Sequence record: PQ330092.1
DNA length: 64,000 nucleotides
Strand: one strand, 5' to 3'
Positions 1,797-55,000 of the stretch are shown here, in pieces. A program made the position numbers and the translations under genes. The notes beneath the pieces were generated by a model, which was not told the origin of the DNA, did no database searches, and worked only from the letters and a program-made list of their open reading frames with translations. Within the stretch, counting starts at the first letter, position 1; each line of letters begins with the position of its first letter.

Positions 1797-4700
1797 TTAC
1801 TTAACTAATAATATATTTTTAATATCATTACCACTAACTTGTAGACTATCAGTGTATACTGAAAGATCTATAGTGTAACTATTTTGTGTGTAACGTTTTA
1901 ACATATCATAATTACCTAAATTAATTCCATTGAAAGAATATGTAGTATTAAGTTTAAAATCATGTTCTGCACTATACATTACACCACGGAGTAAATTATT
2001 TGCATTTCTAACTTCAACTTTTTCATATCCAATCGATATAATATCATTCATGTTTGCGGCTGAACCGGATAAAACATTATTTCTAATACTATAAGGACTT
2101 ATTGATTTAGGTTGAGAAACATAGGTTGTATTTTCTTCACTAATGGTTGTGATGTTAGTAACAGTACCACCAACAACACCGATATACATACCGTCAACCA
2201 TTGGGAATCCATAAACCCATATCCCTTCATTATTTCTAAACGGTTGAATAACACTTGAATCATATTCGATAACGTTGATTTCTAAACTATCAGTCATTTT
2301 AGTTCTTGCCAATTCACTAAGAACTCCCGCACCCGTAATTGGTAAGTTATAACCGTTATCGATAGTAATTCCATCAACATCAAATATTTCATTAGAGATT
2401 ATCCAAACGTCAACGTCATCTGGTGTTATTCCGTCATTGTACTTACCACCATTTAAAGTAGTATCGTAGAAAACATCATAATTAATTACATCAATGGTGT
2501 AATTTCTATTTTGTTCATACAATTTAATACCATTCTTGACAAATTCAGGGTCAGCAAATGTTCTAACACGAACAATGTTCAATGCTAGAGGCTGTACTGG
2601 CTCATTTTGTTGTGCAAGAGTGATGTTATCATAACGGAGAACTGCACCAGTACTCTCATCAATCAATTCAATCGTTTCCTTACCTGTATTTCTTACAGTG
2701 AATAGGATCGGAGTTGTATTGTTTTTGATGTTAGATACACGCAAGATTGTTTCCCATGTGTGATTTTGATATCTCACAAAATCTTCACCATCAGGAGTGA
2801 AAATCATCACCTTATCACCATCAGATAGGTCATTGTCAACTATTTCTGCTTCAGTTAAGCTATTAATAGATCTCACACGATAGAAATATTTTTCATCAAA
2901 CTTCGATGTTGTTTTATTAATATCATTTTCAATCTTAGCATATGAAGGAATACTTACAATTGCTTCTGTATGTTTATATGGATTGATAATTGCCATACCT
3001 TCAGTTTGATATCTGCTGTTATCACGTAATTGTACAAGAGATACATTGTCAAACCCATATCCATCAACTGTAAATCTAATTTGACCTACATCACGCCCAG
3101 AAGGGTTTATGTCAGATATATCCACAATATAAGGATCAACTTCATCATCTTTAACTTCCCATTTTATTGAAGAAGTTTGAGATTCCAATGCTAGGTTATC
3201 AAATGCATTCATATCATTGAAGTACTTAGCTTCAGTAATACTATCAAGTATATATTGATAATCAGAATACATTGGATTATTTTGATCTAGTGGTAAATCA
3301 TCAAGATTTATTTCAGCTAGTTCAACCATTTCACCATTTGTGATAAAATAATCTTCCATGAAATCATCAATACTTTGTTCATCAGGTATACTTTGATATA
3401 CACCGTTAACATTTAAGTAAACATATTTTCGTGGAATCATTGTAATTGCATAGATATCAATTGGGGTCTTACTAAGAATCTCTTCAGCTTTTTCGTACTT
3501 ATCAGTAGCGTCTTTGTCGAATAACCCTCTCATACCTGCTAATACGTGAATAGCATCAGTATAGAAACGGGTATCACCACCTACTTCATCATAACGATAA
3601 ACATATACACCATACTCAACTTCAAGTTTAACTTTTACTTCATAGTCTGATGCGTCAGGATTTTTATCTTTAATTAATGAAATGTATTTTTGATACAATT
3701 CACTGCTTATTTCAAAATATCCATAGTTATAATCATTACTAGAAGAAAAGCCTAATGGAAGTCTAGTACTAGGATTGTCATTATAAGTAAGTCCACTAAA
3801 TCCACATCCAACTTCATCGTGAATTTTCTCATCACTTATATCTTTATAAAGTTTCAAACGGTTTGCCAATGTGTTATACTGAACATATTGTCTAAGGTCA
3901 GTAAACATATCGTTATGCGTTGATTCTTTATAAACACGTTCCAATGTAGCAGTGAATTCATCAGTTGCTTCTAAATCTTCCGCATGGTCTTTATACCACT
4001 GGTTAACGCCATATGCTGTTCCTAGTGTTACATCCAATTCTGGATAGTAGATTTGCATTTGATAAGCAATAAGAAGATCGAAAGTTTCTTCACTATATTC
4101 TGGGAAAGAATATATATAACGTTGTAATTCATAGTTACTAACAGCATCCTTTTCATTGGATTGATATTTGTTATTAACACTTACTAATTCATTTATGCTT
4201 GCCAAATCTTCATTTGGTTTACACTGAATATTATCATAATGCATAATAATATCAATTTCTTGGAATCTTCTATTTGGTGTAACGAAATCACTTGGTAGTG
4301 AACCTACCTGTTCCCATTTTTGGGTAATTTCATTAAATTGAGCGTACTCATAATCCCAAATATCTTTTTCAGTTTTGATCCAAGAACCATCAACGAAAAT
4401 ATATCCATTAGGATCTAAATCATTACATAGACCTTTTATTAAATCATCATCAGATGTCTTTTGCTCTATTTGTGAACGAATTTTAGTTCTATAAGGTTTA
4501 ACTTCTTCAAAATATTCAACAATTTGATTAATCAAATTATCGTTTGAATAGTTTTGAACTAATGATTGTTCCAAACCAACAATATAGATATATGATGTTT
4601 TAAATACCCAATCCACAACACTTTGTTCAACATGTACATATTTGACCATATCAAAAACAATTTCGCTTTGATGTAAATCGAAAGAATTTTTGAGTAAAGC

Positions 4701-15313: not shown

Positions 15314-16078
15314 TTAATCCTTTAATAATATGTTAAAATTATCATAAAAGTACTTTTTTAGTACTGAAATATAGTCTTCATTATACTTCAATCGAAGCAA
15401 ATTTATTCCATTCTCCGTACAGTACGTGTTTTTAATTTTATCATTGTGTTGAGTTTGTTTTAGTGATTTTGCACCACCCCAATGTTCTGAACATTGAAAA
15501 TGTTGTTCACCATCATATTCGATACACAAGTTTAAATCTTCAATATAAAAATCAAATGGCAATGTTAAAATATTCTTACAATTATCAAATCTCTTTTCTC
15601 TAACATATTTAAATGAAGATAATATAGTTTCTATATCTGATACTGCCTTGGATTGAGTACTATCTCTCATACATTTTTCACACCCGTATCTACTATTCAA
15701 GTGATTGTCAGGTCGCTGGTAGAATATACCATGTATGGGGCAACTTATTGATATATGTGTTTTATTATTAACATAATTAGCCATACTATAATCAAATTTA
15801 TTTTTAAATTTAAAATTGGCTTTTTTCTTGAAATTTAAAAAATTCTGTGGACTTTTTTGTCTATTTGTATTATATTCAATAGAACATTTCATGCATCCTT
15901 TACCACATGTATGGTCATTTGGTGTTTGTAGAAAAAATCCATGTTTTTCACAGCCAATCCATACTTTTGTTTTAGCATTATGATATTTAACCATACTATA
16001 GTCATATTGTATACCATGAACTTTTATTGAATTGGTTACAAATTTATATTTTGTCGATCTAGTGGTTGCATATTTCAT
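15314..16078 (-). CDS. Free-standing homing-endonuclease-like protein: two Cys/His repeats plus PD-(D/E)xK (Vsr/DUF559-like) nuclease
   Basis: Repeats YDYS..Y....V.I.C..HG.F.Q.P..H....GC..C; C-terminal LPFDFYIEDLNLCIEYDGEQH...DKIKNTYC..NGINLLRL; GGAG RBS. Confidence 0.75.
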   Translation of the reverse strand: MKYATTRSTKYKFVTNSIKVHGIQYDYSMVKYHNAKTKVWIGCEKHGFFLQTPNDHTCGKGCMKCSIEYNTNRQKSPQNFLNFKKKANFKFKNKFDYSMANYVNNKTHISISCPIHGIFYQRPDNHLNSRYGCEKCMRDSTQSKAVSDIETILSSFKYVREKRFDNCKNILTLPFDFYIEDLNLCIEYDGEQHFQCSEHWGGAKSLKQTQHNDKIKNTYCTENGINLLRLKYNEDYISVLKKYFYDNFNILLKD

Positions 16079-16558: not shown

Positions 16559-17047
16559 TTATACGGATTCAACAATACGTGCCATCTTTTCCGCTCTTGA
16601 AGTGGTTTGTTTATACCATGTACTATCACGCAATTCCTTACCAGCAGTTTTATAATCAGCCTTACCTAATGCGGTCATTGCTTTTTTAAATTTTAAAACT
16701 TTGGTTTTGCCCATCTGGAATACCATCAACCATAATACACGTTGAACCTGTACAGGTGCGGTCATACCAAATTGTTCATAAATTGATTTTGCATCATTGT
16801 ACGCAGTTTGAGCATCTTTAAGAAGAAGTTGGTCAGCTTGTGCTTCTGTTAAACCATTCTTGAAATTTTCACCAGGTAAAACTAGGTGACCATAGCCAAT
16901 AGTATCAAGACCTAAGCTGTCTTTATATACCCAAAACTTATCATTTTTAAAATAACCAAGTTTTTTCTGATAAGCAATAGTTCCTTCAAATTCTTTAATT
17001 TCCTTAAAAAATTGCTCATCTGTATTTTTAATTTCCCATTTACTCAT
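16559..17047 (-). CDS. T4-type (GH24) lysozyme, possible endolysin
   Basis: E..(EG)...YKDSLG..TIGYGHL catalytic E/D/T pattern and S.WYKQT..RA C-terminus. Confidence 0.85.
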   Translation of the reverse strand: MSKWEIKNTDEQFFKEIKEFEGTIAYQKKLGYFKNDKFWVYKDSLGLDTIGYGHLVLPGENFKNGLTEAQADQLLLKDAQTAYNDAKSIYEQFGMTAPVQVQRVLWLMVFQMGKTKVLKFKKAMTALGKADYKTAGKELRDSTWYKQTTSRAEKMARIVESV

Positions 17048-17063
17048 AAAGATATCCTCGTTT

Positions 17064-17087
17064 TATTTATAGTACTAAAATATTTAT
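17064..17087 (-). promoter_or_regulatory. Tandem late promoters for the stand-alone lysozyme
   Basis: TATAAATA at 17064-17071 and ATAAATA at 17081-17087. Confidence 0.7.
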
Positions 17088-19747
17088 TGACATGCCTCTA
17101 AACGACGAGCCATTAACTCAGCACGGCGAGTAGTTTGGCGATACCAAGCTGAATTACGTATTTGAGCAGCAGCTTGTTTATAATTACCTTTAGCTAATTC
17201 AGACAACATAGTTTTAAATTTAAGTACCCCACCTTTACCCATCTGGAATACCATTTGGCATAGTACTTGTTGAGCCAAATAAGGTGTTTTCATGTTGTAT
17301 GAAGCATAAATTGATTTAGCATCATATATAGCTTTACTACTATCACGAACTAACATATCGTTGGCTTGCTGTTCAGTTATTCCATCTGAAAAGTTTTCAC
17401 CATTAATAATTAAGTGACCATAACCAATAGTTGGATACCCACGACTATCCAAATAACGCCAGAATTTACCATTACGATAATATCCTTTTGCTTGTTGGTA
17501 TTGTAATGTACCTTCATATTCTTTTAATTCAGAAATAAATTGTGCATCACCTGGAACAACTTTCCAATCGATTGCAGTTTTATCAACATTTCCAATATTA
17601 TAGGTAGGTTGCTCCACCGGAGTTGTTGAAGCTCCACTTCTCTGTGTTCTTCTCCTACGAGGCACATGACGAGAACCACGTTGAGAATATCCAGTACCTA
17701 TCGTTTTGATTTTTGTTGTAACTACCAATTCATCACTATCAACTGAAGGTTGTACAACTGCTTTTGGAGCAGATTGATTAGTTGCTTGACCACCAATTAA
17801 TGTTTTATTCGCCGCATCAGACCCTGTTCCTGTTTGTGAAGCATAAAATAATCCTGGGTCAACAGAACCACTGAATCCAAGAACATTTGCTGATGTAACA
17901 CGAATTTCAAACTGTATGACACCATTTGCTTTTCCAACAACTTGACCTTTTTGAACAACATCTTTGTTTAATAAATCAGATTGAATATTATAAAAAATAG
18001 ATTTATATCCAGACTTATGTTGTATTAAAAGAGCACCATTAGTAATTACTACCACACCACCATCTGGTGCAACTACATCACCTTTACATTGTATTTCCCA
18101 ACCTGAACGGTCTGCCTTTCCTCCACTTTGTGTTGGAACACCTTTCCCCCAGTAACCATATTGTCGAATAGTACCGCTACATGGCATTAACATATGTAAA
18201 CCTTCATATGTAATACTATATCCAGTCATCCCAGGATCAGATGTCATCAAATCTTGTGATTGAACTTGTTCAGTTTCTGATGTATAGTTAACAAACTGAA
18301 CAGCTTCAGTGTCTTGTGCTACGGGTAATTCTGGTGATACATCATTTGCTGGTTGTGGTTGTACTGGTGATTCACTAGAACCACTTCCACCACCTTGTCT
18401 TGGTGGTTCAACATAACTACCATGATTTTCAGCGTTAACCCATGCAGCAATATCATGAATGTGTTCATTAAGACCAGCAGATGGTGTTCTAAAGTTTGGT
18501 GCAGTAAATTCAGCAGTACCGCTATTACCACCACTATTAACTGTTAATGTTTGACCACCACCACTAATAATTGCTGATGATGATCCAATTAGGTTTGCAG
18601 ATGTTGCGGCAGAAATAGAAGCATTTGAACCAGCCGTAATATCAGTACTGCTACCACTTTGCATACGTAATGATGCAGCAGTAACTAAACGAAGGTCTGC
18701 CCCAGAATTAACAACAACTTGTCCACCAACTTTTGCATCAAGAGCACCAATTAGATCTAATTTAGTATTTGCACCAACTCGTGCATTGAAATCTTGTCCG
18801 GTTTCAATATTATATGAACGTCCAGCAGTAATATTAATATCTTGACCAGCACGAATATTAATATTCTTATCACAGTGCATGTCAATATCACCTTCACCAG
18901 TGAATTTTATACGTGCAGTGCCATCACGATTAATTAAAAGAACATCACCAGTAGCTTCTGATAAAAGAAGTTGTGCACCACTACGTGTTTTTATTACGAC
19001 ACCTTCATTTTTACGAGAACCAACACGTGTATCGTTTACTGGGTTATTAAATTGTGTATCTTGATATCCATCTGGGTCTTGATCCCACGTTGGTGCTGTT
19101 AATTCCTCTTCAGTATATCCATCATCAATAATAAAACTATTACCACGTGGCGAAGACATACCATATACAGTACTGGTGGTTTGTCGAGTACTACTACGAT
19201 TCGCCAACCCAGCTTCTTCGTCATATAAAAGGTTTTGCTTTTTAAGACCTGCGATAATTGGAACGTTAGCATATTTGTCTTGCATATCGGTAGTGATAGT
19301 GTTACGATCATAGTCAGTAACAGGAAGTGGCATATCAGTTCCACCATAATTACTTACTTCAGTTGCCATACCTGGAACCATCGTATTCATACGCTGGTCA
19401 TATACACAACCAATCCAATATGCTTGGAATGTACGGGCTTGTGCAAAAATTACAACAACTGTACACCCTACGTCTGGTGGTACTGCCCAAAAACCGTATC
19501 CTTTTGGATATTGACCATATGCATCAGCACTTGGAATACCTGGTGTTTTACCAGCAAAAGGAGACATGTAAGATGCTTCTATCCATGATTCTTTTGAGTT
19601 TTTATCACTTTGAGAACCTTGTATCCAAACTTTCAGTTTTCCTGATTTAGTTGGATCTCTGTTATCCATAACAGTTGCTAACTGCGGATAAGATGGGTCA
19701 AAACGACCCAACTGCTGTTGTGCATACTTTTTACTTGTATCTGCCAT
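17084..19747 (-). CDS. gp5: Baseplate central spike/tail lysozyme, gp5-like (OB fold, beta-helix, degenerate M23, C-terminal lysozyme)
   Basis: ATVMDNRDPTKSGKLKVWI and PPDVGCTVVVIF OB motifs; Gly/Ala/Ser beta-helix repeats; HIH motif; C-terminal YLDSRGYPTIGYGHL. Confidence 0.8.
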   Translation of the reverse strand: MADTSKKYAQQQLGRFDPSYPQLATVMDNRDPTKSGKLKVWIQGSQSDKNSKESWIEASYMSPFAGKTPGIPSADAYGQYPKGYGFWAVPPDVGCTVVVIFAQARTFQAYWIGCVYDQRMNTMVPGMATEVSNYGGTDMPLPVTDYDRNTITTDMQDKYANVPIIAGLKKQNLLYDEEAGLANRSSTRQTTSTVYGMSSPRGNSFIIDDGYTEEELTAPTWDQDPDGYQDTQFNNPVNDTRVGSRKNEGVVIKTRSGAQLLLSEATGDVLLINRDGTARIKFTGEGDIDMHCDKNINIRAGQDINITAGRSYNIETGQDFNARVGANTKLDLIGALDAKVGGQVVVNSGADLRLVTAASLRMQSGSSTDITAGSNASISAATSANLIGSSSAIISGGGQTLTVNSGGNSGTAEFTAPNFRTPSAGLNEHIHDIAAWVNAENHGSYVEPPRQGGGSGSSESPVQPQPANDVSPELPVAQDTEAVQFVNYTSETEQVQSQDLMTSDPGMTGYSITYEGLHMLMPCSGTIRQYGYWGKGVPTQSGGKADRSGWEIQCKGDVVAPDGGVVVITNGALLIQHKSGYKSIFYNIQSDLLNKDVVQKGQVVGKANGVIQFEIRVTSANVLGFSGSVDPGLFYASQTGTGSDAANKTLIGGQATNQSAPKAVVQPSVDSDELVVTTKIKTIGTGYSQRGSRHVPRRRRTQRSGASTTPVEQPTYNIGNVDKTAIDWKVVPGDAQFISELKEYEGTLQYQQAKGYYRNGKFWRYLDSRGYPTIGYGHLIINGENFSDGITEQQANDMLVRDSSKAIYDAKSIYASYNMKTPYLAQQVLCQMVFQMGKGGVLKFKTMLSELAKGNYKQAAAQIRNSAWYRQTTRRAELMARRLEACQ

Positions 19748-23198: not shown

Positions 23199-24038
23199 AT
23201 GACAAATAGACCAAAGCGTAAAAAGTATCTCAATAATGCTGATTTACTTCGTGAAATACAAAAAAGTAAAATTTCATATTGCTGGTTATTAGACAAATCA
23301 TATAGTATGTATGATTATATTGTTTTTCATGAGTCAGAAATTACTGCTGAGTTACTAGAAAAAGCTAAGGCAGCACGAATTAAACGACTGAACAATGAAA
23401 TGCTTGATAGTATTCGTGAAAAGGAAAATATGAGTGCTAAAAAAGCTAAAGAATATGCAGATGAACACAATTTAGTTATCACTGACGTTCCAATTGATGA
23501 AGTTGTTATTCGTGTTATTACAGATGAACATATTCCACCAGATACTAGAGTTAACTTTGAACCATTCAAGCATTATATTGTAGATAATGAAGGTATTCTC
23601 TATGAAGTTTGTCGTTCTCACTGGAAAGGCGACCTTGAAACTGGTGAATTCAGTACTGTTCATGGTAAAATTACAAATGAACTTGGGAAGATGTTCATTA
23701 AACTTGCAGAGGAAATCTCACACAAATCTAATTACAGAAACTATACATACTTAGATGAAATGATGGGTGATGCAAGAATACAATTAGTTAAAAACGCACT
23801 TCTCTTTAAAGAGAGCATTCTTTATAAAAAAGATAAACCAGCAGTTCAGCTAAATCCTTTCTCTTACTATACATCATTCGTAAACAATAGTTTTCGTTCT
23901 ATATTGAATAGTGAGAAAAATGTTCGAAATATACGTGATGATTTACTTGAAATGCATGGCTTTACGCCATCACATACACGTCAAATTGAAATTGAATTGA
24001 ACATGATTGAAAGGAAAAATGAAGATGGCTCTGTTTGA
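23199..24038 (+). CDS. gp55: Late-transcription sigma factor, gp55-like
   Basis: YLNNADLLREI...TNELGKMFIKLAE..S..SNYRNYTY.DEM.GDA...NPFSYYT; directly upstream of gp47/gp46. Confidence 0.8.
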   Translation: MTNRPKRKKYLNNADLLREIQKSKISYCWLLDKSYSMYDYIVFHESEITAELLEKAKAARIKRLNNEMLDSIREKENMSAKKAKEYADEHNLVITDVPIDEVVIRVITDEHIPPDTRVNFEPFKHYIVDNEGILYEVCRSHWKGDLETGEFSTVHGKITNELGKMFIKLAEEISHKSNYRNYTYLDEMMGDARIQLVKNALLFKESILYKKDKPAVQLNPFSYYTSFVNNSFRSILNSEKNVRNIRDDLLEMHGFTPSHTRQIEIELNMIERKNEDGSV

Positions 24039-27722: not shown

Positions 27723-27752
27723 AATTCCTCACCAAACTATTTGTTATCAAAA

Positions 27753-27760
27753 TATTTATA
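27753..27760 (-). promoter_or_regulatory. Late promoter for Endo VII
   Basis: Perfect TATAAATA. Confidence 0.7.
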
Positions 27761-27813
27761 GATTAGTTATTTGCAATATTTTAAGTACTTAATGAATATT
27801 TTTATAAAAATAG

Positions 27814-27842
27814 TGAGACAACTTTAAAGTTTGTGCTATAAT
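27814..27842 (+). promoter_or_regulatory. Putative middle-class promoter driving an ORF-free region
   Basis: TGAGACA-N16-TATAAT with extended -10 TG. Confidence 0.75.
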
Positions 27843-27848
27843 GTTTGT

Positions 27849-28347
27849 TGTAGTAATGACAATCCTGTTGAATGCAGAAATGCATATAAATTAGAACCTG
27901 ATCCTATCGAAAATGTAGATGGCAGATGAGCAGTTCAACAGTGCGATGAGCAAAAGAAACCCGTTAGATGTGGGCATAGTTTGAACCCCTCACGGCAATG
28001 CGGCTCAATAAAGAACTCCGATAAGCATACAGAGAGTTCCTAGATAGACATATAAGGATCGCACCTTACCAGATTTGCTAAGGGAGTTTATTAAGTGATT
28101 TTAATAAACAGCCTGAAGTTTGATTGTATAGACTTTCAGGTGAGTGTCAGGATGATTAAGACTGACGACCGTTGCACATGACTGCGATAGAGAGAAACAG
28201 AGCAACCCGCTTTCGTTCTTAATATATTTTTAAGAAATTCGCAATACAATAAATGCTGAAACCATCAGCGTCAAGAAATAGAGACTTCATTGTCTCTTTT
28301 TTATTGTCTTCATTCCCCTGCGGGGGGATGAAAATGTCCTCAACAAA
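27849..28347 (+). ncRNA. Candidate large structured non-coding RNA, family not recognised
   Basis: Own promoter, no ORF over about 25 codons seen on the sense strand, at least 10 stems including a GAAA tetraloop and G-U pairs valid only on the + strand, terminator-like hairpin at 28280-28302. Confidence 0.6.
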
Positions 28348-28400
28348 TCCCGTCAAGTATTAAATCTTTTAAAGTTCTTTATAATTTAATTTAATTAAAT

Positions 28401-28460
28401 GAATATGAGTTACGTAGTAACGAATATTCTTCAGCTAACGAATGAAATGAGTTAGATGAA
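28401..28460 (+). other. Two tandem hairpins with GNA triloops and tandem G.A pairs in an AT-rich tract (candidate origin element)
   Basis: 28401-28429 GAATAT-GA-GTTAC-GTA-GTAAC-GA-ATATTC; 28430-28460 TTCA-G-CTAAC-GA-AT-GAA-AT-GA-GTTAG-A-TGAA. Confidence 0.55.
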
Positions 28461-28522
28461 TCCAATAATATTAAAATTAATCCTTTCATAATTCAATTCA
28501 AATAATTCTGTAGTTTAAAACC

Positions 28523-28551
28523 AAAAAAAAAAACCAGCAACAATGTGCTGG
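28523..28551 (-). terminator. Terminator of the gp26/gp51 operon
   Basis: Minus strand CCAGCA-CATTGT-TGCTGG followed by T11. Confidence 0.8.
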
Positions 28552-28562
28552 CTATATGAAAA

Positions 28563-28772
28563 TTAGTGCTTCTCGTTTTGTTTTTTAATTTTTTTATTAA
28601 AAGACTTAACTAATAAGTCTCTATCTATTAATGGCATATTAAGGAGTGTTCCATAGTCAATGTTATCCATATATACAGAACATTCCATTAGTGCATTTTT
28701 GATTTCTGACTTATTCAGTTCTATCTCCTTCAGTACTTCTTGTATTTCTTCAGGAGATGACTGGAGAAGCAT
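28563..28772 (-). CDS. Small tail/baseplate assembly chaperone (gp51 C-terminal or 'T'-like segment)
   Basis: TAATG overlap with gp26-like gene; IDYGTLLNMPLIDRD resembles the short second segment of tail assembly chaperones. Confidence 0.5.
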   Translation of the reverse strand: MLLQSSPEEIQEVLKEIELNKSEIKNALMECSVYMDNIDYGTLLNMPLIDRDLLVKSFNKKIKKQNEKH

Positions 28773-29608
28773 TACTCGAAAAAATGACTAGGATCATATT
28801 TTAGTCCATCAATTTCCCATTGATGATTACATCCATCACATTCTACTTCCATACTATGAGATACACCAATTTCAAGTACTTCATCCATTTTTTCACGAAT
28901 TAGTTTAAGTACTCCCTTCGATTGTTGTCCAAGCCATTCATTAATAAATTCTTTTTCAACTACTTCATCACCATCTGGTGTTATAATTTTTGCAATAACT
29001 CCACCAATCATATCGAAGTTAAGTTGAGCCATGTTTTCAAATACTTCAGAAAATATTTTTACTTTTTCATCTTTATCAATATCAGCAGTTTCAAGAAACT
29101 TAGTCTTCTGCTGCTCACTGAACATGCGTTCAGCAAACGATGAATATTCTTTCCATGTCAGTGGTCTAAATTCTAAACGTAGTCCATTATCTAAATCAAT
29201 TGATGGGATTTCTTCAAATGCTTGTGCAGTTTCAAGAAGATATGATAGATTACGTTCAAATCGACCTTCTTTTTCACATTCAGGACATACAACGTTAATA
29301 TCATATGTTTCTTCTTTAGAAGCAACTTTAATAGCAATAAGAAGCATTTCAACGTCATTTACATACAACTCATCAGCGTCAATTACATTAGGAACACAGT
29401 TTTCAATAACACGGGATACTGCATCTCCGTTTAGTAACATATCGGGGGTATTAAGTGTCATTTCATCACGTGCACTACGTGCACAAACTCCACATTTGAC
29501 ACCTTTTGGACCTAGAACTCCTTCTTTATAAGGAATAACGCCGTTTGTAACTAACTTAGTACTGATCTCTTCAATTTTAGTGTACTTAGCAAGTGGATTC
29601 ATAGCCAT
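28772..29608 (-). CDS. gp26: Baseplate hub assembly chaperone, gp26-like
   Basis: NPLAKY...SARDEMTLNTPDMLLNG...CVPN...DVEMLLIAI...CPEC and CDGC; divergent from the tape measure gene. Confidence 0.7.
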   Translation of the reverse strand: MAMNPLAKYTKIEEISTKLVTNGVIPYKEGVLGPKGVKCGVCARSARDEMTLNTPDMLLNGDAVSRVIENCVPNVIDADELYVNDVEMLLIAIKVASKEETYDINVVCPECEKEGRFERNLSYLLETAQAFEEIPSIDLDNGLRLEFRPLTWKEYSSFAERMFSEQQKTKFLETADIDKDEKVKIFSEVFENMAQLNFDMIGGVIAKIITPDGDEVVEKEFINEWLGQQSKGVLKLIREKMDEVLEIGVSHSMEVECDGCNHQWEIDGLKYDPSHFFE

Positions 29609-29642
29609 TTTATTAAATCTCCATGTAATAAATGTGTTTTAG

Positions 29643-29706
29643 TATTTATAAGACTAAAAAAGATTAAATTAAACTAATTTTTATATTCTCTATAGTTTCA
29701 TAAATA
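29643..29706. promoter_or_regulatory. Divergent late promoters
   Basis: TATAAATA on minus (29643-29650) and ATAAATA on plus (29700-29706). Confidence 0.7.
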
Positions 29707-29738: not shown

Positions 29739-31943
29739 ATGGCTGGAAATACAAGTGATTACCTACTCCAGCAGTTGGTTAATCAAACTAAAGATAACAA
29801 CGATAGTTTGAGTGCTATTCGTGAGTTATTGGCTGAAAATATAAAAAATGATAGAAAGAAATCCGGTTCTAAAAGTGGAAAACGTAATGGAAGTAATTCA
29901 TCAAGTACTGGAAACCGTGGCTCTCGAACAAATAACAAAGCTGATGATGGTAAAGAATTTGGAAAAATATTCAAATCATTATCATCTGAAGTATCGAATG
30001 TCGGCAAAACTATGATGAGTACGTCTGCAAACGTTAGCAATGTTGTAAACTCACTAGGAATGAGTGCATCTTCATTTGCTGGTTCATTAGCAATGATCCC
30101 AGGTCCAGTTGGTGCAGCAGCATCTGCATTCAAATTGGTTGCTGACGCTGGTTTAGCAGTTTATAATGTGTTAAATGCACAGCTTGAAGTTTATAATAGA
30201 ATAAACAGTGCTGGTGTCGCTCTATCTGAAGGTTACGGCTCCATATTAAAAGGTGCTGGTGCATCAATGATGAGTATTGATGCATTTGGTGAAGCATTAC
30301 AAACTCATAGTGCCGTTGTTGCACAATTAGATGGTGCATATGGTGATGGTGTTTCTACATTTGGTAAATTATTGGGTACTGTGCAACAAGCACAAAATCA
30401 ATTAGGTTTATATGGTGTTTCTCAAAAAACATTAACTGATTTAACTGCACGTAATATTAAATTCCAAAAGCAATTTGGTGGAAGAGAAATGTTACGTAGT
30501 ATGGATCAAGCAAAAAGTACTGAACAGTTTATCATGAGTATGACTAAGTTCAGTAAAAGTATGGGTGAGTCAGTTGATGCACTATTAAATAAAACACAAA
30601 ACTTAGATAAATCATTAGACACACGTTCAATGCAAATCGCATTACAAAACTATTCTGGATTATCTAGTAAAGCAGCAGTTGCAACATCAAAAGCATTTAA
30701 CGAAGCTGCTGCCAGTATGGGTGATGCTGGTGCAGATTTTCTACGTTTAATTTCACATCGTTTAACTATTGGTGGAGTACCAGATGATTTATTGACTCCA
30801 GTACTGAACCAATTTGCTGATTTAGGTGAGAACTTGGTACGTAGTGGTGTTACTGATTCACAAGAAATTCGCCGTCAACAATTGGAATTTGTTAAAAAGA
30901 ACAAAGAACTAATAAAGCAAGATCTATTAAATCAGATACAATTAGGAAACACTACGGCAGCAACCTTCAACCAACAACTACTTGATATGGAAGCTGCGAT
31001 TAATGATCCTAAGAGTCAACCAGCAGATAAACTAACACAATTCACTGATAGATTCAATAGATGGATTAGTAAAGAATTTACTGAACCATTTAATAAAATG
31101 TATGCAGATACACAAAATTCTATTGCGGATTACCTTACTGATATTGCAGACCGTACTGATGGTGCATGGGAATTTATCGGAGAGTTAGCACTTGATGGTT
31201 TTGGTTTGGTTCCTATTGCGAAAGATGCAGTTGCGTATTTGGATAGGATTGGTGGTGAGTTTGAGCAGTGGTTAGAAGGGTTAGGTACTGAAATTTTTGG
31301 TAGTGGATATAATAAAGTTTCAGAAGCATTTGATAGCTTTATGAATAACCTAATGGATCTTCCTGGTAAACTTTGGGATTCTGTTAAAGGTTGGTTTGGT
31401 GGATCAGACGACAAAGTAAAAGTAGAAAACAATTCTGTTACCGATGGTGCAGAAAAAGTTAATAATTATTTTGAAGAAAAAATGAATTCATTTGGTGATT
31501 ATATTTCTAGTTCATTTGATGGTTTTTTAAAATGGAATTCAAGTAGAAACTTTAAACAACCAAAACCCCTTGATGAATCAGTTGCTGAAAAACTTATTAG
31601 TAGTGGTCTTGAAAATAAGCCAAGAGCAACTGCGAGAATCGAAAAATCTGAACATGTTGCACCATATGTTACCATAACTCCAAAAACTTTTGATAAATCA
31701 GCATGGGGTCCAAATGAACCACCAATTCAAGCTGAACCGGACGATTATGAGGCCATGAAAGCGATGATAAATAGTGGTAGTAGTATGGCAAATGCTAATA
31801 ATAATGCCACAATATCAGAAGACATGAAAGAGTTACTTAAAAAACTTGCTGATGTTAATGAGCAATCTCTATCTGCCGTGCAACAGACAAATAACTATCT
31901 AAGAACTATCTCTGAAAACACTCAAGGTGAGAGAAACAGTTAA
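29739..31943 (+). CDS. Probable tape measure protein (gp29 equivalent)
   Basis: 734-aa Ala/Gly/Ser-rich helical protein next to tail chaperones, late promoter. Confidence 0.55.
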   Translation: MAGNTSDYLLQQLVNQTKDNNDSLSAIRELLAENIKNDRKKSGSKSGKRNGSNSSSTGNRGSRTNNKADDGKEFGKIFKSLSSEVSNVGKTMMSTSANVSNVVNSLGMSASSFAGSLAMIPGPVGAAASAFKLVADAGLAVYNVLNAQLEVYNRINSAGVALSEGYGSILKGAGASMMSIDAFGEALQTHSAVVAQLDGAYGDGVSTFGKLLGTVQQAQNQLGLYGVSQKTLTDLTARNIKFQKQFGGREMLRSMDQAKSTEQFIMSMTKFSKSMGESVDALLNKTQNLDKSLDTRSMQIALQNYSGLSSKAAVATSKAFNEAAASMGDAGADFLRLISHRLTIGGVPDDLLTPVLNQFADLGENLVRSGVTDSQEIRRQQLEFVKKNKELIKQDLLNQIQLGNTTAATFNQQLLDMEAAINDPKSQPADKLTQFTDRFNRWISKEFTEPFNKMYADTQNSIADYLTDIADRTDGAWEFIGELALDGFGLVPIAKDAVAYLDRIGGEFEQWLEGLGTEIFGSGYNKVSEAFDSFMNNLMDLPGKLWDSVKGWFGGSDDKVKVENNSVTDGAEKVNNYFEEKMNSFGDYISSSFDGFLKWNSSRNFKQPKPLDESVAEKLISSGLENKPRATARIEKSEHVAPYVTITPKTFDKSAWGPNEPPIQAEPDDYEAMKAMINSGSSMANANNNATISEDMKELLKKLADVNEQSLSAVQQTNNYLRTISENTQGERNS

Positions 31944-38182: not shown

Positions 38183-39280
38183 ATGCCAAACGTAAGTATC
38201 AACAAAGAAGAGTTTATTAACCAAATGACTGCTAAGTATGGAGAATTTGACTTCAGTACTTTAGTATTCAAGGCAAGTAAGACAACAGTGAAATGCAACA
38301 AGTGTGGAAAAGAAAACACCAAACCTGCACTTCGTCACATTGCATGTACATGTGCATCATGTTATTCAAACATGTCACAACGTTCAAATAACGACACATT
38401 CATCAGTACTGTAGAAACTAAATTTGGAAAAGATAAATTCAAATTTGATAAACTAAATTACACTAACGCTATAACAAAAGTAACACTGTTCTGCACTGAT
38501 AAAGAGCACAACAATTACTTTGAAATCACACCAAATAAATTTCTTTCTGGTAAAGGATGCCCCGTATGTAATAAAAATGAAGCATATAGTACTGAATCAT
38601 TCACTGCAAAAGTAAAAGAAAACTATGGTGATGCATTGGACTTGACGAATACTGTTTATGTCAATCAGAAAACTAAAGTAACGGTTCATTGCACAAAAGG
38701 ACATCATGACTGGACGGTAGATCCAAAAACTCTAATCGTCGGTAAAACTGGCTGTGGTACATGCTCTGGTAAAGGCGGTCGAAGTACGGAACGTTTCATT
38801 GAACTGGTGTCTCCTATCCATAACCATAAGTATGATTATAGCTTGGTTAATTATACTATAAGCGAGAATTATGTTGATATTGTATGTCCGATGCATGGTG
38901 TTTTCTCCCAACAACCAAAAGCACATATGGCTGGTAAAGGATGTCCATCATGTGGTGAATATGGATACCAACCATCAAAACCTGGATATTTCTATGTACA
39001 AAAACTAACTAACAATAACAAGACGGTGTACAAATATGGGATCACTGGTGATATGAAACGCCGTGTCAACGAACAAAGCCGCAATTCTGAGTTCGAGCAT
39101 GAAGTACTTATAGAACGCTACTTTGAAGATGGCAATCAACCATTACTGTTGGAAAAGTTCATAAAGAAATACATTGAAAGTGGTGTGGTAAGTACTGAAG
39201 AGTTACCGTCAGGATTTACTGAAACATTTGATGCTAAGTATCTTGAAAGTGTTTTAGAAATTGTAAATACTTTTAAGTAA
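38183..39280 (+). CDS. Free-standing homing-endonuclease-like protein: Cys/His repeats plus GIY-YIG-like domain
   Basis: Three repeats ending GKGCPVC/GKTGCGTC/GKGCPSC; C-terminal GYFYVQ...YKYGIT....RR...E. Confidence 0.78.
   Translation: MPNVSINKEEFINQMTAKYGEFDFSTLVFKASKTTVKCNKCGKENTKPALRHIACTCASCYSNMSQRSNNDTFISTVETKFGKDKFKFDKLNYTNAITKVTLFCTDKEHNNYFEITPNKFLSGKGCPVCNKNEAYSTESFTAKVKENYGDALDLTNTVYVNQKTKVTVHCTKGHHDWTVDPKTLIVGKTGCGTCSGKGGRSTERFIELVSPIHNHKYDYSLVNYTISENYVDIVCPMHGVFSQQPKAHMAGKGCPSCGEYGYQPSKPGYFYVQKLTNNNKTVYKYGITGDMKRRVNEQSRNSEFEHEVLIERYFEDGNQPLLLEKFIKKYIESGVVSTEELPSGFTETFDAKYLESVLEIVNTFK

Positions 39281-49742: not shown

Positions 49743-55000
<5,258 letters not shown>

Follow-up and report, generated by a model that had tools for sequence, protein, structure and literature searches.

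Phage lambda makes two products from one tail-assembly gene through a programmed −1 frameshift. At an X_XXY_YYZ heptamer located a few codons before the stop of G, some ribosomes slip back by one base, so that a common short form (G) and a rare C-terminally extended form (GT) sharing an N-terminal part are made from the same mRNA (PMC5009743). P2 E/E+E' follows the same logic. Frameshifting in tail assembly is otherwise near-universal in long-tailed phages, with the T4-like phages as the noted exception. T4 carries two separate, divergently transcribed genes, 26 and 51, whose products are listed as hub assembly chaperones, with gp51 described as absent from the final particle (PMC3004832). In cyanophages and marine vibriophages, a "gp51" lacking the first ~200 residues, yet resembling the C-terminal region of T4-type gp51, was noted and left unexplained (Sullivan et al. 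2010, PMC3037559).

We analyzed a window of 64,000 nucleotides (record PQ330092.1) from an Asteriusvirus, a jumbo E. coli phage of the 121Q/PBECO4 type, in which the 1.4-kb region of interest is 100% identical to phage JP4 and 99% identical to 121Q. An initial annotation, made from the sequence alone, had proposed that a canonical −1 slippery site joins a gp26-like chaperone gene to the next small ORF in the manner of lambda G/GT, beside a tape-measure gene, and that the frameshift strategy extends to this T4-related jumbo clade. The observation proved accurate in its description of the site and frames, and the interpretation is supported by the comparative data, although the tape-measure identity of the neighboring gene is not confirmed. 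In our reading, the site very probably lets some ribosomes make a longer, T4 gp51-like protein, a strategy that comparison with relatives attributes to most T4-related phages, while T4 itself carries two genes.

Anatomy of the gp26-like unit

The features of the locus are collected in the table. The gp26-like gene ends CAT TTT TTC GAG TAA, placing F276 and F277 as the P- and A-site codons of an in-phase heptamer. The last A of the stop is the A of the ATG of the separately listed 69-aa ORF (a TAATG overlap in the −1 frame), which is preceded by no Shine-Dalgarno sequence but only by a GAG two bases upstream. After a −1 slip, the reading TTT TTT CGA GTA ATG CTT... stays open for 71 codons, giving a fusion of 277 + 71 = 348 aa with the junction ...PSHFF|RVMLLQ.... 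The conceptual junction reads YDPSHFFR followed by VMLLQSSPEEIQEVLK, against a zero-frame C-terminus of YDPSHFFE.

Features of the locus and its context in the window
Feature	Coordinates	Strand	Description
Late-promoter-like motif	29643..29650	−	TATAAATA, a match to the T4-type late promoter consensus about 35 nt upstream of the gene start; promoter function inferred
Shine-Dalgarno sequence	29619..29622	−	GGAG, 10 nt before the ATG of the gp26-like gene
gp26-like gene (zero frame)	28772..29608	−	278 aa, the short product; PF12322 T4_baseplate (86.3 bits against a gathering cut-off of 24.5, E 3e-24, residues 58-270); phrog_150 baseplate hub (E 2e-34); fold model pLDDT 88.6
Slippery heptamer	28778..28784	−	T_TTT_TTC in X_XXY_YYZ phase; proposed −1 shift site
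Zero-frame stop	28772..28774	−	TAA
−1 frame extension	28563..28778	−	71 codons plus stop, RVMLLQSSPEEI...NEKH; C-terminal domain of the proposed long product; predicted three-helix unit, pLDDT 88.4
−1 frame stop	28563..28565	−
Listed small ORF	28563..28772	−	69 aa, phrog_18291, inside the extension
Intrinsic terminator	28522..28553	−	8-bp stem followed by a T run, just after the extension
Neighboring gene	29739..31943	+	734-aa virion structural protein (phrog_14121), divergently transcribed; possible tape measure
Late sigma factor gene	23199..24038		gp55-like
Second end-of-gene heptamer	50779..51273		A_AAA_AAC; rejected as a frameshift site

The number of late-promoter-like motifs in the window is not above chance, but this and most other copies sit just upstream of structural genes on the correct strand, and a gp55-like late sigma factor is encoded at 23199..24038. 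The gp26-like protein shares conserved Cys pairs and the C-terminal Phe-Phe with T4 gp26: in a 13-sequence alignment that includes T4 gp26, C108, C257, C260 and the C-terminal F276 and F277 are invariant. The identity of the divergent 734-aa gene as a tape measure is only a lead. A note in the RaK2 record and weak atlas matches to tape-measure families point in that direction, and the CBB homologue is a virion protein detected with 29 peptides, but the gene has no Pfam hit, no significant BLASTP match to T4 gp29, and no significant match to solved structures.

On this genome alone the pattern could be due to chance. The 49 long ORFs of the window hold 79 in-phase XXXYYYZ heptamers, of which eight lie in the last 12 codons of a gene and two are followed by a −1 frame open for 60 codons or more. 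The other such case, A_AAA_AAC, looks like chance, as a terminator-like hairpin and an ATG of its own separate the two ORFs, both of which match full-length PHROG families.

Conservation of the slip site in relatives

To distinguish recoding from coincidence, the homologous junction was examined in 20 GenBank phages (121Q, ph0011, UE-S1, BF17, JNE01, A4, RaK2, EJP2, 7t3, Hallingskeid, CBB, Serratia BF, Yen9-04, GAP32, XaC1, Vibrio 2.275.O, Atu_ph07, PA5oct, RsoM2USA and SCTP-2) and in 31 IMG/VR contigs, with protein identity to the window ranging from 100% down to 23%. Every one has an in-phase T_TTT_TTC at the invariant Phe-Phe near the C-terminus, except that two have T_TTT_TTT. The codon before it always ends in T although it encodes H, N, S, R, Y, D, V or T. 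The invariant Phe-Phe dipeptide itself favors T-rich codons in AT-rich genomes, with a per-lineage chance of 0.1-0.46; nevertheless, for 19 lineages under 60% identical, using the codon usage of each gene, the probability that synonymous codon choice alone gives xxT TTT TTY at the Phe-Phe is about 10^-10.6, far beyond chance.

The −1 frame shows the complementary pattern. The zero-frame stop wanders from 1 to 11 codons after the site, while the −1 frame is always the open one, opens only 2-5 codons upstream of the heptamer in most lineages, runs 69-82 codons, and is conserved from its very first residue (R-x-x-L-L-x-x-x-P-E-E-I ... L-L-N-M-P-x-x-D-R-D-L-L-V-K). No initiation codon is conserved: RaK2, PA5oct and RsoM2USA have no annotated small ORF and no usable start codon, and in A4, 7t3, EJP2, Hallingskeid and XaC1 the annotated ATG lies 18 or more codons inside the conserved region. 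A phmmer search of the extension against 1.84 billion representative proteins found it only as ORF calls of 51-67 aa and never as an in-frame fusion of about 350 aa; two long hits (1681 and 4007 aa) were taken as low-complexity noise. The initial annotation had named, among the findings that would count against it, a non-conserved heptamer and a small ORF explained by translational coupling alone. Neither was observed, since the heptamer is kept in every single-copy relative examined and the −1 peptide is conserved from the slip site, upstream of or without any start codon. This pattern is expected for a recoding site, not for two coupled genes.

The proposed frameshift is not special to the jumbo clade. 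The same heptamer, followed by a homologous −1 extension of 57-65 codons, is present in cyanophage S-PM2 and 10 of 12 related contigs, in Vibrio phage KVP40, in Cronobacter phage LPCS28 (Straboviridae), and in the T4-like Rhizobium phage LG08. In the two remaining cyanophage contigs (L076 and L077), the Phe-Phe has become Asn-Phe and the site is a different canonical heptamer, A_AAT_TTT, in phase and with the same extension in the −1 frame. Replacement of one slippery sequence by another argues for selection on slipperiness. An alignment of 13 sequences was too diverse to seed a locus scan.

No stimulatory element was found. RNAalifold on 32 sequences predicted 0 pairs, no upstream SD-like element was detected, and the local hairpin of the window (z −2.7) is modest and broken in the 83%-identical phage BF17. 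Not all phage frameshift sites have such an element, so its absence lowers but does not remove the claim.

Relationship to T4 gp26 and gp51

T4 gene 26 ends GAG TTC TTT GAG TTA CTA TAA. The Phe-Phe is kept, but there is no heptamer, the −1 frame closes at once, and gene 25 follows. A search of the whole T4 genome with a profile of the extension gave a single hit, inside the C-terminus of gene 51, the neighbor of gene 26 (E 0.07). T4 gp51 is itself a PF12322 protein (residues 1-201, E 4e-52) with a tail of about 48 residues. A profile of 40 conceptual fusions aligns colinearly with a gp51 profile (37-339 of 348 against 12-246 of 249, probability 95.9%, E 5e-9), including the junction (FF-R-x-LL..PEEI against VF-K-LL.NPDEIF) and the C-terminal motif of gp51. 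As single-profile HMMER comparisons with gp51 were only borderline (E 0.03 for junction plus extension), the PF12322 part was removed and the tails were compared profile against profile with hhalign. This comparison still scores 26.8 (E 6e-5), against 9.9 +/- 2.1 and a maximum of 17.1 for 200 column-shuffled controls. The tail of a gp51-type long form is thus present at this locus, but in the −1 frame; PF28602, a precomputed Pfam assignment on gp51 homologues, was not scanned. Both the T4 genes and this unit lie next to baseplate and tail genes and carry a late-promoter-like motif. They differ in that the body here is about 70 aa longer than in T4 and only about 20% identical, and in that the extension is 71 aa against about 48 aa.

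Independent support comes from the marine phages. The S-PM2 small ORF is annotated in GenBank as "gp51", and Sullivan et al. (PMC3037559) aligned the cyanophage counterpart with the gp51 C-terminus. This is the same −1 extension ORF, about 57-65 aa and directly after gp26, but it was described as a stand-alone, truncated gene, whereas we read it as the 3' part of a frameshifted gp26-gp51 gene, in which the upstream gp26 gene supplies the missing residues.

Copy number matches the presence of the slip site. One PF12322 gene goes with a slip site in 121Q, RaK2, PA5oct, Vibrio 2.275.O, Atu_ph07, LPCS28, LG08, S-PM2 and KVP40, while two genes go with no slip site in T4 and Aeromonas phage B614. 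In a maximum-likelihood tree of the PF12322 domain, gp26 and gp51 of the two-gene phages together form one side of a well-supported branch (97/94) against all 24 frameshifting genes, with LPCS28 as the nearest frameshifting gene. The tree suggests that the two-gene state is derived if the root lies among the frameshifting lineages, but as the root is not established, this is an inference.

The resemblance to lambda G/GT holds for mechanism and logic, not for homology. PF12322 is the only Pfam hit, no TAC Pfam or PHROG hit and no PDB sequence hit were obtained, Foldseek recovers the HK97 chaperone 2ob9 only at E 0.49, and VIA-align hits are generic helical hairpins with Z up to 8.4. Neither the extension nor the body has a convincing structural neighbor in the PDB. 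The heptamer is U_UUU_UUC rather than G_GGA_AAG, and the gene is not between tube and tape-measure genes on one strand: it is divergent from the 734-aa candidate, and no tube gene lies in the window, although in LG08 the gene does follow a tail tube gene. The binding partners are unknown; binding of the short form to the tape measure, or of the extension to the tube or initiator, was not examined, and no complex prediction was run, as no specific pair could be justified.

Model and alternative explanations

We propose, with high confidence, that promoter, gp26-like ORF, small ORF and terminator constitute one recoded gene with two products. In this model, most ribosomes stop at the TAA one codon after the heptamer and make the short form, equivalent to T4 gp26. 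In a minority, with tRNA-Phe in the P site on UUU and in the A site on UUC, both tRNAs would re-pair one base back and the ribosome would continue in the −1 frame, making a long form whose architecture, a PF12322 domain plus a helical C-terminal tail, is that of gp51, the baseplate hub assembly catalyst. The shift would fix a high ratio of short to long product from one mRNA, as lambda G/GT does, and T4-type and Aeromonas-type phages would have replaced it with two paralogous genes. The analysis itself demonstrates the anatomy, the conservation, the homology to gp51, and the association of one gene with a slip site and of two genes with none. That the shift takes place on the ribosome, that its efficiency is low, that both forms act as non-virion chaperones of hub and tail-initiation assembly, and the direction of evolution are inferences; all evidence is comparative and computational, no protein, ribosome-profiling or reporter evidence exists for any member, and no proteome of infected cells was found. 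With no conserved stimulatory structure, the efficiency is probably low, which fits a protein described in T4 as a catalyst not found in the particle, as well as the absence of the gp26-like protein from the published CBB virion proteome table.

The main rival, which we consider unlikely, is transcriptional slippage: insertion of one U in the T6 run by RNA polymerase would give the identical 348-aa protein, and RsoM2USA has a run of 9 T and the locus L039 a run of 7 T at the site. In nearly all lineages, however, the run is exactly 6 T followed by C, which is short for programmed slippage by bacterial RNA polymerase, usually requiring 8-9 or more; the phase is conserved; and A_AAT_TTT, a tandem-slippage heptamer, leaves no long homopolymer. 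Among public runs, the locus was found only in Logan contigs of DNA or RNA libraries, which show no indel at the T6 run but cannot reveal rare insertions or expression, while the longer terminator run at 28522-28523 does vary.

Still less likely are two ordinary genes, with the small ORF translated by termination-reinitiation and the heptamer a by-product of the Phe-Phe in AT-rich genomes. In its favor, TAATG or ATGA overlaps exist in the 121Q-type, BF17, JNE01, Serratia BF and Yen9-04 genomes, every GenBank record annotates two genes or none, and heptamers near gene ends are common in this genome. In the lineage of the window, an ATG sits at codon 3 of the extension, so that some independent or coupled initiation is not excluded there. 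Against it stand the absence of a conserved start codon, the conserved peptide beginning at the heptamer, the late opening of the −1 frame, the synonymous conservation, the exchange of one heptamer for another, the presence of both parts in one frame in T4 gp51, and the loss of the slip site exactly where a second gene exists. A decaying relic, in which a 1-nt deletion broke a former gp51-like gene, would account for the architecture of gp51 with a frame break but is very improbable, as the extension is open and under purifying selection across lineages whose protein identity falls to about 20%, and the break is always at the same slippery site with a −1 offset.

A broader reading is tentative, somewhat less likely than not: the −1 frameshift would be the ancestral way in which the whole T4 superfamily makes its hub and tail-initiation chaperone pair, with genes 26 and 51 a later duplication that fixed the two translational outcomes as two genes. 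On this reading, gp26/gp51 are the functional counterpart of lambda G/GT, which would remove the T4-like exception.

The mechanism and its logic are known; what differs is the gene family, the wide clade distribution, and the explanation offered for the T4 26/51 pair and the truncated gp51 of marine phages. Full-text searches, which did not extend to subscription-only literature and so do not rule out a prior description, returned no account of a frameshift in gp26 or gp51 genes; nor did the genome papers of CBB and XaC1 or the 2016 recoding review, and all GenBank records examined annotate two ORFs or only one. The finding would correct the annotation of a core morphogenesis gene in hundreds of genomes of Rak2-like and other jumbo phages, marine cyanophages and KVP40-like vibriophages, where a 50-70-aa "hypothetical protein" or "truncated gp51" is really the 3' part of a recoded gene. 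It links two long-enigmatic T4 proteins as paralogues that in most relatives are two translational outputs of one gene, offers a natural case of a frameshift replaced by gene duplication (or the reverse), and adds a widespread U_UUU_UUC site with no evident stimulator to the set of bacterial frameshift signals. The ORF-free 0.8 kb next to the unit was also scanned and contains no tRNA and no credible Rfam match.

Variation at the proposed slip site and in gene 26

In two IMG/VR cyanophage contigs (L076 and L077), the slip site at the end of the gp26 gene is A_AAT_TTT instead of T_TTT_TTC; the invariant Phe-Phe has become Asn-Phe, while the −1 extension is intact. The T run at the site is 9 T in Ralstonia phage RsoM2USA (L019) and 7 T in the loci L039/L040; transcriptional slippage is more plausible in these lineages than elsewhere. 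Among contigs of the public run X1, the homopolymer run of the terminator varies in length (+1 and −2), while the T6 slip-site run shows no variation. T4 gene 26 carries an annotated internal in-frame start product, 26', indicating that the family uses a second way of making two proteins from one gene.

Other features of the window

A second end-of-gene heptamer, A_AAA_AAC, lies one codon before a stop, and the −1 frame stays open 244 codons into the next ORF. However, a terminator-like hairpin and an own ATG lie between the two ORFs, and both match full-length PHROG families (15898, 27915); this arrangement is probably due to chance. About 0.8 kb between the endonuclease VII gene and the extension ORF has no ORF over 45 aa and is also unannotated in 121Q and BF17. 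Searches of this segment revealed no tRNA and no credible Rfam match, the only hit being to Arrc14, at 32 bits against a gathering score of 99, over the terminator.

HNH/homing-endonuclease ORFs sit inside the structural modules. A 162-aa ORF duplicates the C-terminal lysozyme part (profile positions 727-885) of the adjacent 887-aa gp5-like hub gene. The terminase large subunit ORF matches only the second half (positions 435-890) of phrog_36964, suggesting a split or two-part terminase gene in this clade.

Coordinates of the additional features
Sequence	Position	Strand	Feature
Window	50779..51273	+	ORF with A_AAA_AAC one codon before its stop
Window	51318..52001	+	Next ORF
Window	27723..28562		ORF-free segment
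Window	28522..28523		Terminator homopolymer run
Window	15314..16078	-	HNH/homing-endonuclease ORF
Window	38183..39280	+	HNH/homing-endonuclease ORF
Window	16559..17047	-	162-aa ORF
Window	17084..19747		gp5-like hub gene
Window	51976..53616	+	Terminase large subunit ORF
RsoM2USA (L019)	2268 onward		T run
T4 (L021)	2803..3090	-	26'
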